A stretch of DNA of 64,000 nt. Source: Rebecca billardiae RCC1528. Its lineage: Eukaryota; Protista; Haptophyta. Positions 42,599 to 57,814 of the stretch are shown one piece after another (position 1 is the first letter of the stretch; every line of letters starts with the position of its first letter). Under the pieces are notes generated by a model that searched no databases, was not told the DNA's origin, and worked only from the letters and a program-made list of their open reading frames with translations. The stretch spans positions 682,001 to 746,000 of the forward strand of contig OZ251236.1 of the NCBI GenBank assembly GCA_965240325.2, written 5' to 3'. A program made the translations under genes and the position numbers.

Positions 42599-43064
42599 CC
42601 ACGGCTCGTCTCGTCAACGGTCAAGTCTCACTCTCGTCATCAAGACGTACGACGTCGACGATGCGGATGTCGATGACTCCGCGACGATGACTAATTCCAT
42701 GATGGCGGGTTAAAGACACAGGCACGAGGGCGCAGCTCTCCTGATTCGTCTGTAGTGGTACTGGTCGAAGCTTGCAGCAGTGGCAGTGGTGTGAGCACGT
42801 TGATGTTGGTCCCCATGCCCATGGGCATGGCGGATGTCGTTGTTGTCGTCGTCCGGACGTCGTCAGGCCCACCAGGAAGTGCATGGGTACGAAATCAAAG
42901 GCGAGTGAGCATGTTGGCGTCGGCCAGGCCGTCCCCTACTTGGTCAGCAGCTGGTGCGGATGATGTCGTCGCCTACTTGGTCAGTGGCTGGTCATGGTGG
43001 ACGATGGTGTAGCCTGTTCTTGGTCAGCAGCTGGTGGATGATGTTGTGGCCGAAGTTAGTAGTA

Positions 43065-43846
43065 CAGGGTCTCCAACATTAAACTGGACACTTTGGGCAG
43101 CAGCTCAGCGTACGGCCTGTGGCTGCCTCGCGCGGGGTCAGGAGCGGCCAGCTCGGCTCGTGTGCACCCCACTAGGTCTGTCTGCGACCGCGCATAGCCG
43201 GGCAGCCCGCGTGGAGCACCCCTCTGGGTCATGCGGACAGTCGGCACAAGGCTGGTCGTGAGGGCCGTGAAGCAGCCGTGTGGCTTCTGCGCATGTCTGT
43301 AGCCAGCAAGCCCGCTCAAGGCCGCGCAGATATTATTACGTGGCATGGTCGATGACTATGCGGCATGCGCTCGACAGCCCTGGGCAAGCCCGGACGTAGC
43401 GCTACACCAGGAGTATATACGGCTCGATCGGACCAGCCTACCAGTTGCGCACCTCGCTTGCACAGCTGCTGCACAGCCCATCGATCGGCTCTGGCCGTGC
43501 AGGCAAGGGCTACAGTCGGCGCCACTACCCGCAGCGAACGCTGGAGACCCACCAGTGCGCGCACCAACCCGCCCGCCGCCAAATGCAACCGTGCGCCAGA
43601 TACGAATTTTAGCAGGCATGCCACCCGCGGGGGCTCCGTGGACCTGTTCAGAGCCAACCGCTAGTCGGTTGAGCTGTACATCCAAGCCAGCCCTGGCCAC
43701 ACGCTGAGCGCGCCGCTCGCTGCACCCACACCCTGTCGTCATCCGAGGAGTAAGGTCCATGGCGCTCATGCGAGCCTCTGGCCCATCTCATCGTTAGCAG
43801 CCGTAGTCAGCAAAAATCAGTGTCCGAACAATTGTTGGGGACCCTG
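43065..43846. mobile_element. MITE A, copy 1 (782 bp, Tc1/mariner-type TIR CAGGGTCyCCAACA)
   Basis: 14-bp TIR with one mismatch; TA on the outer flank. Confidence 0.85.
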
Positions 43847-46800
43847 TGTGCACACTCGCCTGCCGCATGTTGAGTGACTGTCAGCCAGGGAGCTGAAGAC
43901 GACGGCTTCTCAGAGGCCGCGCGAGCTCGACGGCGGCGCGCGCGGGCACGGTGGGCTGGCGCGGCCCCGGCGCGCGCCCATCCGGCCGCGCGCCGCCGCG
44001 CCAGCCGCTCCTGCACGCGGGCTGACTCAGGCGTCAGCCTCACCCAACCGTGAGCCGCCAGCTGCTTGCCGTGGAGCTGGTCGGGAGAGGATGGGGTGGG
44101 TCGGCTGCTCCCAGAAGCTCCCCACGCGCGCCGCGCGCGCTGCATGCGGGTGCGGCGGGTCGGCGCGGCCCCGCCGCGCGCCCATCCGGCCGCGCGCCGC
44201 CGCGCCAGCCGCTCCTGCACGCGGGCTGACTCAGGCGTCAGCCTCACCCAACCGTGAGCCGCCAGCTGCTTGCCGTGGAGCTGGTCGGGAGAGGATGGGG
44301 TGGGTCGGCTGCTCCCAGAAGCTCCCCACGCGCGCCGCGCGCGCTGCATGCGGGTGCGGCGGGTCGGCGCGGCCCCGCCGCGCGCTCATCCGGCCGCGCG
44401 CCGCCGCGCCAGCCGCTCCTGCACGCGGGCTGACTCAGGCGTCAGCCTCACCCAACCGTGAGCCGCCAGCTGCTTGCCGTGGAGCTGGTCGGGAGATGAT
44501 GGGGTGGGTCGGCTGCTCCCAGAAGCTCTCCACGCGCGCCGCGCGCGCTGCATACGGGTGCGGCGGGTCGGCGCGGCCCCGCCGCGCGCCCATCCGGCCG
44601 CGCGCCGCCGCGCCAGCCGCTCCTGCACGCGGGCATGGCTGCCGAAGATCCGCACGGAATCGGCCGGGCATCAGACAGCAGTACCCGAATAACGGTTCGA
44701 ATCGCTCAGTAACGTCGAAAGCAATGCCTGCCGGCCGCGGCGCGCCGGCGCGCAGGTCAGCACGGCGGGCACGCGCTGGTACGGACCACTGTGGTGCTCC
44801 TGCGAGCAGCTGCTGACGCGTTGGCGCGATGAGACCAGCGTCCTCGCAAACACGTGACCAGGTGGCCCAGTGCCACTGCCCTGCCTCCACACGCTAGTCG
44901 AGGGAGTGACGCGTGCCGAATGTGTCTCGCCGGATGACCACCAAGGCTGCTGTCAATAAATATGAGGTGGGTCTCGTCGACAACCCGAACTGCTGGGTGT
45001 CTATTTGAAATATACTCCGCAGATTCTGCCAGTGGCAGCTACGGAGCTACGCTCGTCGCCGAGATACCTTCAGTGTGCACACTCGCCTGCCGCATGTTGA
45101 GTGACTGTCAGCCAGGGAGCTGAAGACGACGGCTTCTCAGAGGCCGCGCGAGCTCGACGGCGGCGCGCGCGGGCACGGTGGGCTGGCGCGGCCCCGGCGC
45201 GCGCCCATCCGGCCGCGCGCCGCCGCGCCAGCCGCTCCTGCACGCGGGCTGACTCAGGCGTCAGCCTCACCCAACCGTGAGCCGCCAGCTGCTTGCCGTG
45301 GAGCTGGTCGGGAGAGGATGGGGTGGGTCGGCTGCTCCCAGAAGCTCCCCACGCGCGCCGCGCGCGCTGCATGCGGGTGCGGCGGGTCGGCGCGGCCCCG
45401 CCGCGCGCCCATCCGGCCGCGCGCCGCCGCGCCAGCCGCTCCTGCACGCGGGCTGACTCAGGCGTCAGCCTCACCCAACCGTGAGCCGCCAGCTGCTTGC
45501 CGTGGAGCTGGTCGGGAGAGGATGGGGTGGGTCGGCTGCTCCCAGAAGCTCCCCACGCGCGCCGCGCGCGCTGCATGCGGGTGCGGCGGGTCGGCGCGGC
45601 CCCGCCGCGCGCTCATCCGGCCGCGCGCCGCCGCGCCAGCCGCTCCTGCACGCGGGCTGACTCAGGCGTCAGCCTCACCCAACCGTGAGCCGCCAGCTGC
45701 TTGCCGTGGAGCTGGTCGGGAGATGATGGGGTGGGTCGGCTGCTCCCAGAAGCTCTCCACGCGCGCCGCGCGCGCTGCATACGGGTGCGGCGGGTCGGCG
45801 CGGCCCCGCCGCGCGCCCATCCGGCCGCGCGCCGCCGCGCCAGCCGCTCCTGCACGCGGGCATGGCTGCCGAAGATCCGCACGGAATCGGCCGGGCATCA
45901 GACAGCAGTACCCGAATAACGGTTCGAATCGCTCAGTAACGTCGAAAGCAATGCCTGCCGGCCGCGGCGCGCCGGCGCGCAGGTCAGCACGGCGGGCACG
46001 CGCTGGTACGGACCACTGTGGTGCTCCTGCGAGCAGCTGCTGACGCGTTGGCGCGATGAGACCAGCGTCCTCGCAAACACGTGACCAGGTGGCCCAGTGC
46101 CACTGCCCTGCCTCCACACGCTAGTCGAGGGAGTGACGCGTGCCGAATGTGTCTCGCCGGATGACCACCAAGGCTGCTGTCAATAAATATGAGGTGGGTC
46201 TCGTCGACAACCCGAACTGCTGGGTGTCTATTTGAAATATACTCCGCAGATTCTGCCAGTGGCAGCTACGGAGCTACGCTCGTCGCCGAGATACCTTCAG
46301 TGTGCACACTCGCCTGCCGCATGTTGAGTGACTGTCAGCCAGGGAGCTGAAGACGACGGCTTCTCAGAGGCCGCGCGAGCTCGACGGCGGCGCGCGCGGG
46401 CACGGTGGGCTGGCGCGGCCCCGGCGCGCGCCCATCCGGCCGCGCGCCGCCGCGCCAGCCGCTCCTGCACGCGGGCTGACTCAGGCGTCAGCCTCACCCA
46501 ACCGTGAGCCGCCAGCTGCTTGCCGTGGAGCTGGTCGGGAGAGGATGGGGTGGGTCGGCTGCTCCCAGAAGCTCCCCACGCGCGCCGCGCGCGCTGCATG
46601 CGGGTGCGGCGGGTCGGCGCGGCCCCGCCGCGCGCCCATCCGGCCGCGCGCCGCCGCGCCAGCCGCTCCTGCACGCGGGCTGACTCAGGCGTCAGCCTCA
46701 CCCAACCGTGAGCCGCCAGCTGCTTGCCGTGGAGCTGGTCGGGAGAGGATGGGGTGGGTCGGCTGCTCCCAGAAGCTCCCCACGCGCGCCGCGCGCGCTG

Positions 46801-47524
46801 CATGCGGGTGCGGCGGGTCGGCGCGGCCCCGCCGCGCGCTCATCCGGCCGCGCGCCGCCGCGCCAGCCGCTCCTGCACGCGGGCTGACTCAGGCGTCAGC
46901 CTCACCCAACCGTGAGCCGCCAGCTGCTTGCCGTGGAGCTGGTCGGGAGATGATGGGGTGGGTCGGCTGCTCCCAGAAGCTCTCCACGCGCGCCGCGCGC
47001 GCTGCATACGGGTGCGGCGGGTCGGCGCGGCCCCGCCGCGCGCCCATCCGGCCGCGCGCCGCCGCGCCAGCCGCTCCTGCACGCGGGCATGGCTGCCGAA
47101 GATCCGCACGGAATCGGCCGGGCATCAGACAGCAGTACCCGAATAACGGTTCGAATCGCTCAGTAACGTCGAAAGCAATGCCTGCCGGCCGCGGCGCGCC
47201 GGCGCGCAGGTCAGCACGGCGGGCACGCGCTGGTACGGACCACTGTGGTGCTCCTGCGAGCAGCTGCTGACGCGTTGGCGCGATGAGACCAGCGTCCTCG
47301 CAAACACGTGACCAGGTGGCCCAGTGCCACTGCCCTGCCTCCACACGCTAGTCGAGGGAGTGACGCGTGCCGAATGTGTCTCGCCGGATGACCACCAAGG
47401 CTGCTGTCAATAAATATGAGGTGGGTCTCGTCGACAACCCGAACTGCTGGGTGTCTATTTGAAATATACTCCGCAGATTCTGCCAGTGGCAGCTACGGAG
47501 CTACGCTCGTCGCCGAGATACCTT
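43847..47524. repeat. Three tandem 1224-bp B units joined by CAG; each holds ~3.3 copies of a 204-bp GC-rich subrepeat
   Basis: B1 43847-45070, B2 45074-46297, B3 46301-47524; junctions GAGATACCTT-CAG-TGTGCACAC. Confidence 0.95.
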
Positions 47525-48306
47525 CAGGGTCTCCAACATTAAACTGGACACTTTGGGCAGCAGCTCAGCGTACGGCCTGTGGCTGCCTCGCGCGGGGTCA
47601 GGAGCGGCCAGCTCGGCTCGTGTGCACCCCACTAGGTCTGTCTGCGACCGCGCATAGCCGGGCAGCCCGCGTGGAGCACCCCTCTGGGTCATGCGGACAG
47701 TCGGCACAAGGCTGGTCGTGAGGGCCGTGAAGCAGCCGTGTGGCTTCTGCGCATGTCTGTAGCCAGCAAGCCCGCTCAAGGCCGCGCAGATATTATTACG
47801 TGGCATGGTCGATGACTATGCGGCATGCGCTCGACAGCCCTGGGCAAGCCCGGACGTAGCGCTACACCAGGAGTATATACGGCTCGATCGGACCAGCCTA
47901 CCAGTTGCGCACCTCGCTTGCACAGCTGCTGCACAGCCCATCGATCGGCTCTGGCCGTGCAGGCAAGGGCTACAGTCGGCGCCACTACCCGCAGCGAACG
48001 CTGGAGACCCACCAGTGCGCGCACCAACCCGCCCGCCGCCAAATGCAACCGTGCGCCAGATACGAATTTTAGCAGGCATGCCACCCGCGGGGGCTCCGTG
48101 GACCTGTTCAGAGCCAACCGCTAGTCGGTTGAGCTGTACATCCAAGCCAGCCCTGGCCACACGCTGAGCGCGCCGCTCGCTGCACCCACACCCTGTCGTC
48201 ATCCGAGGAGTAAGGTCCATGGCGCTCATGCGAGCCTCTGGCCCATCTCATCGTTAGCAGCCGTAGTCAGCAAAAATCAGTGTCCGAACAATTGTTGGGG
48301 ACCCTG
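47525..48306. mobile_element. MITE A, copy 2
   Basis: Appears identical to copy 1; flanked by TT and TG rather than TA. Confidence 0.85.
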
Positions 48307-49530
48307 TGTGCACACTCGCCTGCCGCATGTTGAGTGACTGTCAGCCAGGGAGCTGAAGACGACGGCTTCTCAGAGGCCGCGCGAGCTCGACGGCGGCGCG
48401 CGCGGGCACGGTGGGCTGGCGCGGCCCCGGCGCGCGCCCATCCGGCCGCGCGCCGCCGCGCCAGCCGCTCCTGCACGCGGGCTGACTCAGGCGTCAGCCT
48501 CACCCAACCGTGAGCCGCCAGCTGCTTGCCGTGGAGCTGGTCGGGAGAGGATGGGGTGGGTCGGCTGCTCCCAGAAGCTCCCCACGCGCGCCGCGCGCGC
48601 TGCATGCGGGTGCGGCGGGTCGGCGCGGCCCCGCCGCGCGCCCATCCGGCCGCGCGCCGCCGCGCCAGCCGCTCCTGCACGCGGGCTGACTCAGGCGTCA
48701 GCCTCACCCAACCGTGAGCCGCCAGCTGCTTGCCGTGGAGCTGGTCGGGAGAGGATGGGGTGGGTCGGCTGCTCCCAGAAGCTCCCCACGCGCGCCGCGC
48801 GCGCTGCATGCGGGTGCGGCGGGTCGGCGCGGCCCCGCCGCGCGCTCATCCGGCCGCGCGCCGCCGCGCCAGCCGCTCCTGCACGCGGGCTGACTCAGGC
48901 GTCAGCCTCACCCAACCGTGAGCCGCCAGCTGCTTGCCGTGGAGCTGGTCGGGAGATGATGGGGTGGGTCGGCTGCTCCCAGAAGCTCTCCACGCGCGCC
49001 GCGCGCGCTGCATACGGGTGCGGCGGGTCGGCGCGGCCCCGCCGCGCGCCCATCCGGCCGCGCGCCGCCGCGCCAGCCGCTCCTGCACGCGGGCATGGCT
49101 GCCGAAGATCCGCACGGAATCGGCCGGGCATCAGACAGCAGTACCCGAATAACGGTTCGAATCGCTCAGTAACGTCGAAAGCAATGCCTGCCGGCCGCGG
49201 CGCGCCGGCGCGCAGGTCAGCACGGCGGGCACGCGCTGGTACGGACCACTGTGGTGCTCCTGCGAGCAGCTGCTGACGCGTTGGCGCGATGAGACCAGCG
49301 TCCTCGCAAACACGTGACCAGGTGGCCCAGTGCCACTGCCCTGCCTCCACACGCTAGTCGAGGGAGTGACGCGTGCCGAATGTGTCTCGCCGGATGACCA
49401 CCAAGGCTGCTGTCAATAAATATGAGGTGGGTCTCGTCGACAACCCGAACTGCTGGGTGTCTATTTGAAATATACTCCGCAGATTCTGCCAGTGGCAGCT
49501 ACGGAGCTACGCTCGTCGCCGAGATACCTT
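48307..49530. repeat. Fourth B unit (1224 bp)
   Basis: Appears identical to B1-B3. Confidence 0.95.
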
Positions 49531-50312
49531 CAGGGTCTCCAACATTAAACTGGACACTTTGGGCAGCAGCTCAGCGTACGGCCTGTGGCTGCCTCGCGCG
49601 GGGTCAGGAGCGGCCAGCTCGGCTCGTGTGCACCCCACTAGGTCTGTCTGCGACCGCGCATAGCCGGGCAGCCCGCGTGGAGCACCCCTCTGGGTCATGC
49701 GGACAGTCGGCACAAGGCTGGTCGTGAGGGCCGTGAAGCAGCCGTGTGGCTTCTGCGCATGTCTGTAGCCAGCAAGCCCGCTCAAGGCCGCGCAGATATT
49801 ATTACGTGGCATGGTCGATGACTATGCGGCATGCGCTCGACAGCCCTGGGCAAGCCCGGACGTAGCGCTACACCAGGAGTATATACGGCTCGATCGGACC
49901 AGCCTACCAGTTGCGCACCTCGCTTGCACAGCTGCTGCACAGCCCATCGATCGGCTCTGGCCGTGCAGGCAAGGGCTACAGTCGGCGCCACTACCCGCAG
50001 CGAACGCTGGAGACCCACCAGTGCGCGCACCAACCCGCCCGCCGCCAAATGCAACCGTGCGCCAGATACGAATTTTAGCAGGCATGCCACCCGCGGGGGC
50101 TCCGTGGACCTGTTCAGAGCCAACCGCTAGTCGGTTGAGCTGTACATCCAAGCCAGCCCTGGCCACACGCTGAGCGCGCCGCTCGCTGCACCCACACCCT
50201 GTCGTCATCCGAGGAGTAAGGTCCATGGCGCTCATGCGAGCCTCTGGCCCATCTCATCGTTAGCAGCCGTAGTCAGCAAAAATCAGTGTCCGAACAATTG
50301 TTGGGGACCCTG
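49531..50312. mobile_element. MITE A, copy 3
   Basis: Appears identical to copy 1; followed by TA. Confidence 0.85.
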
Positions 50313-50339
50313 TAGTTCAGAAGAGTCACTACAAAAAGT

Positions 50340-57428: not shown

Positions 57429-57814
57429 ATGAGCAGCCAGCAGGTAATACAGTTTACTAAGAATAAGAGACGCACACAGCTCAGGCAGGCGAGATAGTTT
57501 TCTATGGCGATATGGAATGTGTCGTCGTATAATAAGAGACGCACACAGCTCGGGCAGGCGACGAGATTGACGCCCGCCAACTGTCACCGCCCATGAAGCC
57601 GTCGCCGATGGTAGCGCCGCCGGAACAGTAACCGACAGGGTGAGTGAGTCACTGAGTGAGGGTCTCCAACACAGGTATCATATTGGGGCCTCACTGTCAC
57701 TACGACACTAGGAGCGGCCAGCTCGACTCGTGTAGTGCGGTCTACAATCCTTTGACTCAGAGTACTCAGACTGTCGACAGTCTGAGACAAGGGTTGTAGA
57801 CCGCACCGCCCAAG

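Follow-up and report, generated by a model that had tools for sequence, protein, structure and literature searches.

What kind of mobile element leaves behind a block of identical repeats, in which only the two outermost ends carry the mark of an insertion? This question is raised by a 7.2 kb array at positions 43065-50312 of a 64,000-nucleotide stretch of the haptophyte Rebecca billardiae RCC1528 (hereafter the window; C19:682001-746000 of a 72 Mb assembly in 41 contigs with about 67% GC), in which two repeat units, A and B, follow each other in the order A-B-B-B-A-B-A. The original prediction, made from this stretch alone, took B for cargo bracketed by MITEs (miniature transposable elements with inverted repeats), after the fashion of composites built from two insertion sequences (IS), IS-cargo-IS. 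We argue for another identity: the block very probably represents a single insertion into a TA site, that of a non-autonomous transposon of the Tc1/mariner superfamily, in which an internal region (INT) lies between a pair of LTDRs (long terminal direct repeats), and which would have grown into an array by the steps proposed below.

Repeat finding together with direct reading of the junctions bore out the predicted order and unit size: A (782 bp) is present in three and B (1227 bp, including a 3' CAG which overlaps the next A) in four copies, and the copies of each unit are 100% identical (for coordinates see Table 1). A starts with CAGGGTCTCCAACA and ends with TGTTGGGGACCCTG, complementary at 13 of 14 positions, and a GGACACT block shared by both tips lengthens this terminal inverted repeat (TIR) to an imperfect one of about 28 bp. 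The short TIR (CAGGGTCYCCAACA, 13 of 14 positions, with the GGACACT block) is likewise present at the ends of the mobile unit. A is an LTDR that carries its own TIRs of about 14-28 bp with CAG tips. The outer flanks of the array read ..GTAGTA/CAGGG on the left and CCCTG/TAGTTC on the right (the slash marking the boundary), its inner junctions CCTT/CAGGG and CCCTG/TGTGCAC; TA is absent inside, which agrees with the earlier claim of TA at the two outermost ends only and TT or TG within. With one TA on each side, the block must have entered as one unit or grown in place from one. Where two B units meet, the sequence is CCTT-CAG-TGTGCAC, and within each B a 204-bp sequence is repeated in tandem about 3.4 times. 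A and B gave no Rfam match, and their open reading frames (ORFs) are only spurious Arg/Ala-rich GC artefacts.

The nature of B is revealed by two autonomous copies of the element (C29:736988-741368 and C20:1681588-1685960), whose layout is A-B5'-transposase-B3'-A. They contain about 1.4 kb extra inside B, namely an uninterrupted ORF of 417 amino acids (aa) on the minus strand, so that from one A to the other the element consists of the repeats, the antisense transposase and the 440-bp upstream region. Identity between the two elements amounts to 99.68%, their proteins differ at one residue, and no other copy of the 417-aa protein occurs in the genome. Aligned to the autonomous INT, the B of the window turns out to be this INT with one deletion, the right breakpoint of which coincides with the ATG of the transposase, and the left one falls within a 204-bp repeat. 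As B is the INT minus its ORF, it is not foreign cargo, and the view of B as a MITE-bracketed passenger has to be given up: A-B-A is an ordinary non-autonomous deletion derivative of the autonomous A-INT-A element, and the array in the window is a gene-less multimer of the C29/C20 element, LTDR-(INT)3-LTDR-INT-LTDR.

Compared with Pfam, the 417-aa protein scores 27.4 bits for DDE_3, just below the cutoff of 28.6, and DDE_3 was found in all eight members of the alignment made from it and seven database homologues. By phmmer the protein matches the catalytic domain of Sleeping Beauty, and the profile of the eight sequences matches the SB100X catalytic domain over the full length of the domain (E=2e-25) as well as the Tc3 DNA-binding domain (E=1e-4). 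D192, D309 and E352 are invariant, with a D-to-E spacing of 42 (DD42E). Judged by its sequence, this is an intact Tc1-like DDE transposase with an N-terminal helix-turn-helix (HTH) match. The Tc1/mariner signature, which had been read from the TA flanks and CAG tips, is hence joined by a Tc1-like transposase associated with the same TIRs. The transposase ORF is the single credible one within the INT, and no TIR-like or extra transposase-binding sites were found within the INT at up to 3 mismatches, which places the gene outside the TIR-bounded modules: instead of lying between the TIRs of one unit, as in the classical layout, it occupies the interval from one A's right tip to the left tip of the A that follows. 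An INT with a transposase between two long direct repeats having their own TIRs is the LTDR type of architecture, and its characteristic derivatives, i.e. solo LTDRs with target-site duplications (TSDs), (LTDR-INT)n-LTDR multimers and INT-INT substructures, are present too.

Reading the junctions at 60 loci of the genome, stitched by contig coordinates with zero conflicts, showed how these derivatives are distributed. The genome has 43 left ends of A (at up to 2 mismatches), B was found next to A only, and there are 12 composite loci, the window and 11 others, at which A-B(n)-A has TA only on its outside; the earlier proposal of A-B-A as the mobile unit is thereby supported. Solo copies of A flanked by TA on both sides, which had been named as a check, number at least 17 and include older ones of 92-97% identity. 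TA stands at every outer end that was read, except for the truncated left A of C29:1196604, and the flanks differ among loci; the inner junctions are at all composite loci identical to those of the window. In a genome of this GC content, chance is excluded as the reason why about 20 independent insertions are all bordered by TA on either side. C or G prevails at position -3 of the left flank and G at position +3 of the right one, and several flanks are palindromic, which amounts to a weak palindromic C-TA-G preference. A weak preference of this kind, centred on TA, is known for Tc1/mariner elements. B itself varies across the genome from 811 to 1627 bp in steps of about 204 bp.

Some copies deserve separate mention. 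The A-B-A copy at C3:1446654-1449741 includes 100 N inside B, within the 204-bp repeat region, and these repeats were therefore hard to assemble at least once. At C29:1191608-1197385 a full left end of A at 1191608 is followed, about 3 kb on, by a 5'-truncated A (positions 433-782), a long B (1627 bp) and a full A. Both LTDRs of C39:114151-116930 have a private single nucleotide polymorphism (SNP) in common, as might result from concerted evolution, or if the two derive from adjacent units of a multimer. At a distance of 847 bp from the autonomous C20 copy stands an inverted solo A of mixed haplotype (C20:1679960-1680741), perhaps the product of a local hop or of recombination.

How, then, did the array come into being? 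A transposase supplied in trans would pair any left tip with any right tip: use of the outermost pair would move the whole unit and produce TA outside only, and use of the two tips of one A would move or excise a solo A. We propose that A-B-A inserted first, that unequal exchange between the direct repeats would then have yielded (A-B)n-A, that the transposase would have excised an inner A, the scar being sealed with CAG to give a B-B junction, and that this junction would have been copied as B and A units went on exchanging unequally. Any other B in the genome departs from those of the window by 8-12 substitutions and an 8-bp indel; being identical among themselves yet distinct from all others, the B units of the window multiplied in situ after the insertion, and the identity of all units dates the events as very recent, as had been anticipated. 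Unequal exchange is supported by C33, where A copies 1 and 2 share a private 2-bp insertion that copy 3 lacks (A*-B-A*-B-A), as expected from a crossover of a right A with a left A*. The suggestion that the array expanded by recombination between direct A repeats therefore stands in part: it agrees with C33, but A-A recombination alone is unable to create B-B, and we read the B-B junction as the excision footprint of an inner A. All three B-B junctions in the genome (two in the window, one in C21) contain CAG and correspond to B-A-B minus 779 bp of A with the CAG kept, though the underlying events may number only one or two. The canonical footprint of Sleeping Beauty is TA-C(A/T)G-TA (PMC6943129), with which the retained CAG agrees. 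The edges of the deletion share a microhomology of 1 nt only, which, together with the exact position of the CAG, makes a chance deletion unlikely. The two B units of C21 have private SNPs in common and are closer to the single-B elements than to the B of the window, which suggests that the B-B junction would have arisen independently at C21 and C19; loss of B by unequal exchange could mimic such a pattern.

Several points weigh against the proposed course of events, among them that the multimers could instead stem from the integration of A+B circles. Repeated integration of such circles ('translocatable units') into a resident A, or transposase-mediated events between sister chromatids, are unlikely to explain the growth of the array. 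Circles have been proposed by Kojima and Bao for the multimers of KolobokP (PMC9587614), and many relatives of the present element, described below, assemble as cyclic contigs with one module and one INT, which may be circles rather than tandems. However, integration of circles leads to (A-B)n-A and alone is unable to give B-B, the indel pattern of C33 fits unequal crossover, and the support for A+B circles is not direct. Further reservations concern the inserted sequence and its scars. None of the three B-B junctions in the genome is of the CTG type, two of the three CAG footprints may be copies of a single event, and both transposition and excision are deduced from sequence. An inner A has no flanking TA, so its excision may be inefficient; in some Tc1/mariner systems the flanking TA contributes to cleavage. 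Pattern searches for empty sites of the window locus and of C33:958830 found none, and TA is read as a duplication because all outer ends have it and inner ends do not.

Finally, the number and order of the identical units are taken from the assembly alone. Units that are 100% identical leave their count unanchored by sequence, and a related locus has a gap of N, so the true locus might be A-B-A or A-B-B-A with miscounted repeats. We regard such an assembly artefact as quite unlikely: 41 contigs for 72 Mb suggest long reads, within the typical length of which 7.2 kb would fall, multimers elsewhere have SNPs or indels that distinguish their units (B1 and B2 of C21, the A copies of C33), and even a wrong count would leave the nature of the element unchanged.

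Is the architecture of this LTDR element an accident of one family? The identity of the inner junctions in all composites implies that the layout arose once and spread by transposition. The same genome harbours a second Tc1-like family, whose 456-aa transposase is 34% identical to that of the window family. In this family, a TIR-bounded module of 794 bp has TA outside at 6/6 loci with differing flanks, the inner junction is invariant, and a further direct copy of the module stands at the far side of the element. By their coordinates, and with only the best candidates scored there, C30:254847-270933 is probably module-(INT)3-module and C7:2670034-2687618 module-(INT)4-module. The family, which also has a 417-bp satellite, forms long arrays, modules being seen at the array ends only; its transposases are spaced at 3999 bp (four copies) and 4832 bp (three copies), and a dozen further copies cluster on C1:2.32-2.43 Mb.

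Beyond this genome, 84 public contigs encode relatives at 22-41% identity, and the layout recurs in metagenomic ones; for the closest homologues (L062-L064) the length of the Logan contigs is insufficient to reveal a layout. Nine contigs are cyclic, with a direct end overlap equal to the k-mer size of the assembler (such contigs do not distinguish tandem arrays from circles), three (L072, L099, L123) have long direct repeats, and ten more distant ones have ordinary inverted repeats at their ends. In the cyclic units, one TIR pair splits a non-coding arc of 0.76-1.14 kb from a gene arc of about 1.3 kb. The linear contig L099 reads module-ORF-module. L072 has 3.1 kb of unique flank adjoining a module tip, followed by INT and again by the module, which fixes the polarity; the TIR core of this contig is similar to that of L086 and to that of L083. 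In the L085/L087 family the polarity of the tips is ambiguous. In the transposase tree, most rows of which are unlabelled short contigs, all ten cyclic or LTDR-type contigs with a usable ORF fall together with the window family into one clade of 27 rows (93 in the Shimodaira-Hasegawa-like approximate likelihood ratio test, SH-aLRT), and 6/7 of the inverted-end contigs are placed outside. The layout label changes twice on this tree, against a mean of 5.7 after shuffling; as few changes were reached in 1/500 shuffles. Modules of different families, when compared, showed no conservation at the protein or DNA level. By length, modules of unrelated families form two groups in this small sample, near 0.78 kb and near 1.13 kb (764-803 bp in L061, L067, L072 and L085; 1133-1139 bp in L083, L086 and L099; A has 782 bp and the module of the second family 794 bp).

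Shared inner junctions, the second family and the tree of relatives together indicate that the layout is inherited and not accidental. We lean, with some reserve, towards the further conclusion that a Tc1/mariner clade (DD41-42E-like, in green algae and other environmental eukaryotes) with inherited LTDR-INT-LTDR architecture represents its second independent evolution after KolobokP, and this with no homing endonuclease.

An opportunistic composite, in which two independent MITE insertions of A bracketed host DNA B and then travelled together, becomes very unlikely in this light. Such an origin would fit the joint movement of A-B-A, with TA confined to the outside, as well as the existence of solo A, including the older copies mentioned above. 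It is contradicted by the inner ends, which have no TA as independent insertions would leave it, by the identity of B as the deleted remnant of a transposase-bearing internal region, by the lack of any A-less B locus in the genome, and by the recurrence of the two-module layout in the 34%-identical family and in distant relatives, which marks it as inherited. The lineage itself may in ancient times have originated by the capture of B between modules. Identification as a non-autonomous long terminal repeat (LTR) retrotransposon with A as the LTR (a tandem resembling terminal-repeat retrotransposons in miniature, TRIMs, or large retrotransposon derivatives, LARDs) can practically be dismissed and was rejected, for although direct terminal repeats, solo repeats and LTR-INT-LTR-INT-LTR arrays occur as in TRIMs, the flanking duplication is TA, 2 bp instead of the 4-6 bp of an LTR element, the tips are CAG..CTG with a TIR of 14-28 bp instead of TG..CA, a primer-binding site (PBS) or polypurine tract (PPT) was looked for beside A and none was found, and the sole gene of the autonomous form encodes a DDE Tc1-like transposase, with no gag/pol.

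The closest known counterpart of the LTDR-INT-LTDR element is KolobokP, composite-like DNA transposons of the Kolobok superfamily in animals (Kojima and Bao 2022, Mob DNA 13:24, PMC9587614), whose LTDR layout was described as unlike that of any other DNA transposon and whose multimers were attributed to a His-Me nuclease encoded by the element (PMC9587614). In the literature on LTDRs and KolobokP we found no such layout in Tc1/mariner, KolobokP being the sole precedent (Repbase was not covered); literature on terminal direct repeats in mariner yielded nothing relevant, and a paper on Tc1 in yeast names composite transposons only to exclude them. KolobokP and the present element agree in every feature of the LTDR-INT-LTDR architecture, with TSDs at the extreme ends only, and the two length classes of LTDRs in KolobokP may be compared with our module lengths. 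They differ in superfamily and target (Kolobok with TTAA-type targets, here Tc1/mariner with TA), in host (animals, here a GC-rich alga with relatives in environmental eukaryotes) and in coding content, as KolobokP has a Kolobok-type transposase plus a His-Me finger (I-PpoI-like) nuclease and our INT offers room for one gene. KolobokP is further associated with flank deletions of 1-5 bp, unlike the putative clean 3-nt footprint seen here.

With classical Tc1/mariner elements (Sleeping Beauty, Tc1/Tc3, Mos1, and MITEs of the Stowaway type) our element shares the TA duplication, the CAG tips, the TIR of about 28 bp, a DDE transposase with an N-terminal paired-like HTH, a putative 3-nt C(A/T)G footprint and derivatives by internal deletion. 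In those elements the two TIRs of one unit enclose the gene; here it is enclosed by two direct copies of a module, both of them complete; the D-to-E spacing is 34 in Sleeping Beauty and 42 here. Bacterial composites include those with direct IS copies (Tn9/IS1 type) and the pseudo-compound units of IS26. They resemble our element in that two direct TIR-bounded modules mobilise the DNA between them, modules move alone, and recombination between direct copies amplifies in tandem; the coding roles are reversed, the transposase gene being found in bacteria within the flanking IS, around a central cargo, and here in the central part, between non-coding flanks, and their opportunistic assembly contrasts with a conserved trait of a lineage. 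TRIM and LTR tandem arrays have the same repeat-INT-repeat shape, solo repeats and arrays with common repeats, and unequal recombination is the probable source of arrays and solos alike; they lack what distinguishes our element, i.e. a DDE cut-and-paste transposase and TA duplication with no reverse transcription.

What appears new here is the LTDR layout with its solo, multimer and INT-INT derivatives and a very recent burst, in a Tc1/mariner element of an alga and with no nuclease. If our interpretation is correct, this layout would be a convergent strategy, and the nuclease-based account of multimers would be weakened: the layout itself, by permitting solo modules to spread, unequal exchange to form multimers and footprint-sealed INT arrays to seed satellites, would be adaptive, rather than the nuclease. 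Questions arise as to how a transposase chooses among four ends, how the identity of direct repeats is kept up and how a transposon turns into a tandem array or satellite. The system is tractable: besides two autonomous copies that are intact, it offers identical non-autonomous copies by the dozen and putative clean footprints. Caution should also be taken with standard annotation pipelines, in which elements of the LTDR type are prone to be mistaken for LTR elements or composite 'cargo carriers'.

Table 1. Features of the array (window positions) and composite loci of the same family in the genome (contig:position)
Feature	Position	Strand	Basis or remark
Left TA, target-site duplication of the whole array	43063-43064		TA at outer ends genome-wide, never at inner ends
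A1, LTDR, non-coding, TIR-bounded	43065-43846	+	Identical to A2 and A3; TIRs about 43065-43092 and 43819-43846
B1, INT with transposase gene deleted	43847-45073	-	Alignment to autonomous copies; 96 unique nt, about 3.4 copies of the 204-bp repeat (43943-44634), 440-bp region upstream of the lost transposase ORF
B1, kept start codon	44634-44636		CAT on the + strand
B1, terminal CAG (putative footprint)	45071-45073
B2	45074-46300	-	Identical to B1; second B-B junction at its final CAG (46298-46300)
B3	46301-47524	-	Identical to B1; terminal CAG = first three bases of A2
A2, inner LTDR	47525-48306	+	Flanked by TT and TG, not TA
B4	48307-49530	-	Identical to B1
A3, right terminal LTDR	49531-50312	+
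Right TA, target-site duplication	50313-50314
Composite locus	C3:1446654
Composite locus	C12:366905
Composite locus	C12:2723854
Composite locus	C13:2229624
Composite locus	C14:1226446
Composite locus	C19		Window
Composite locus	C20:1681588
Composite locus	C21:138421		A-B-B-A
Composite locus	C29:736988
Composite locus	C29:1196604		Left A truncated
Composite locus	C33:490495		A-B-A-B-A
Composite locus	C39:114151

The surroundings of the array in the window contain further repeats. Its left flank (42930-43045) contains three degenerate copies of a motif of about 45 bp (CTACTTGGTCAGCAGCTGGT...), and further to the left, at 38-42 kb of the window, the GC content reaches about 80%. On the right, a terminus of the CACTACAAAAAG type (CACTA-like) starts 14 bp from the array, at 50327, and is followed up to 51964 by tandem repeats of 199-205 bp studded with the palindrome CTCCGCTGGCGGAGC; the array sits just outside this CACTA-like element, not within it. 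At 57650-57740 there is a degenerate sequence related to A's left end, where GAGGGTCTCCAACA at 57658 fits the TIR at 13 of 14 positions and 24 nt (57710-57733) match A positions 76-99; an older module or a sister module probably left this relic.

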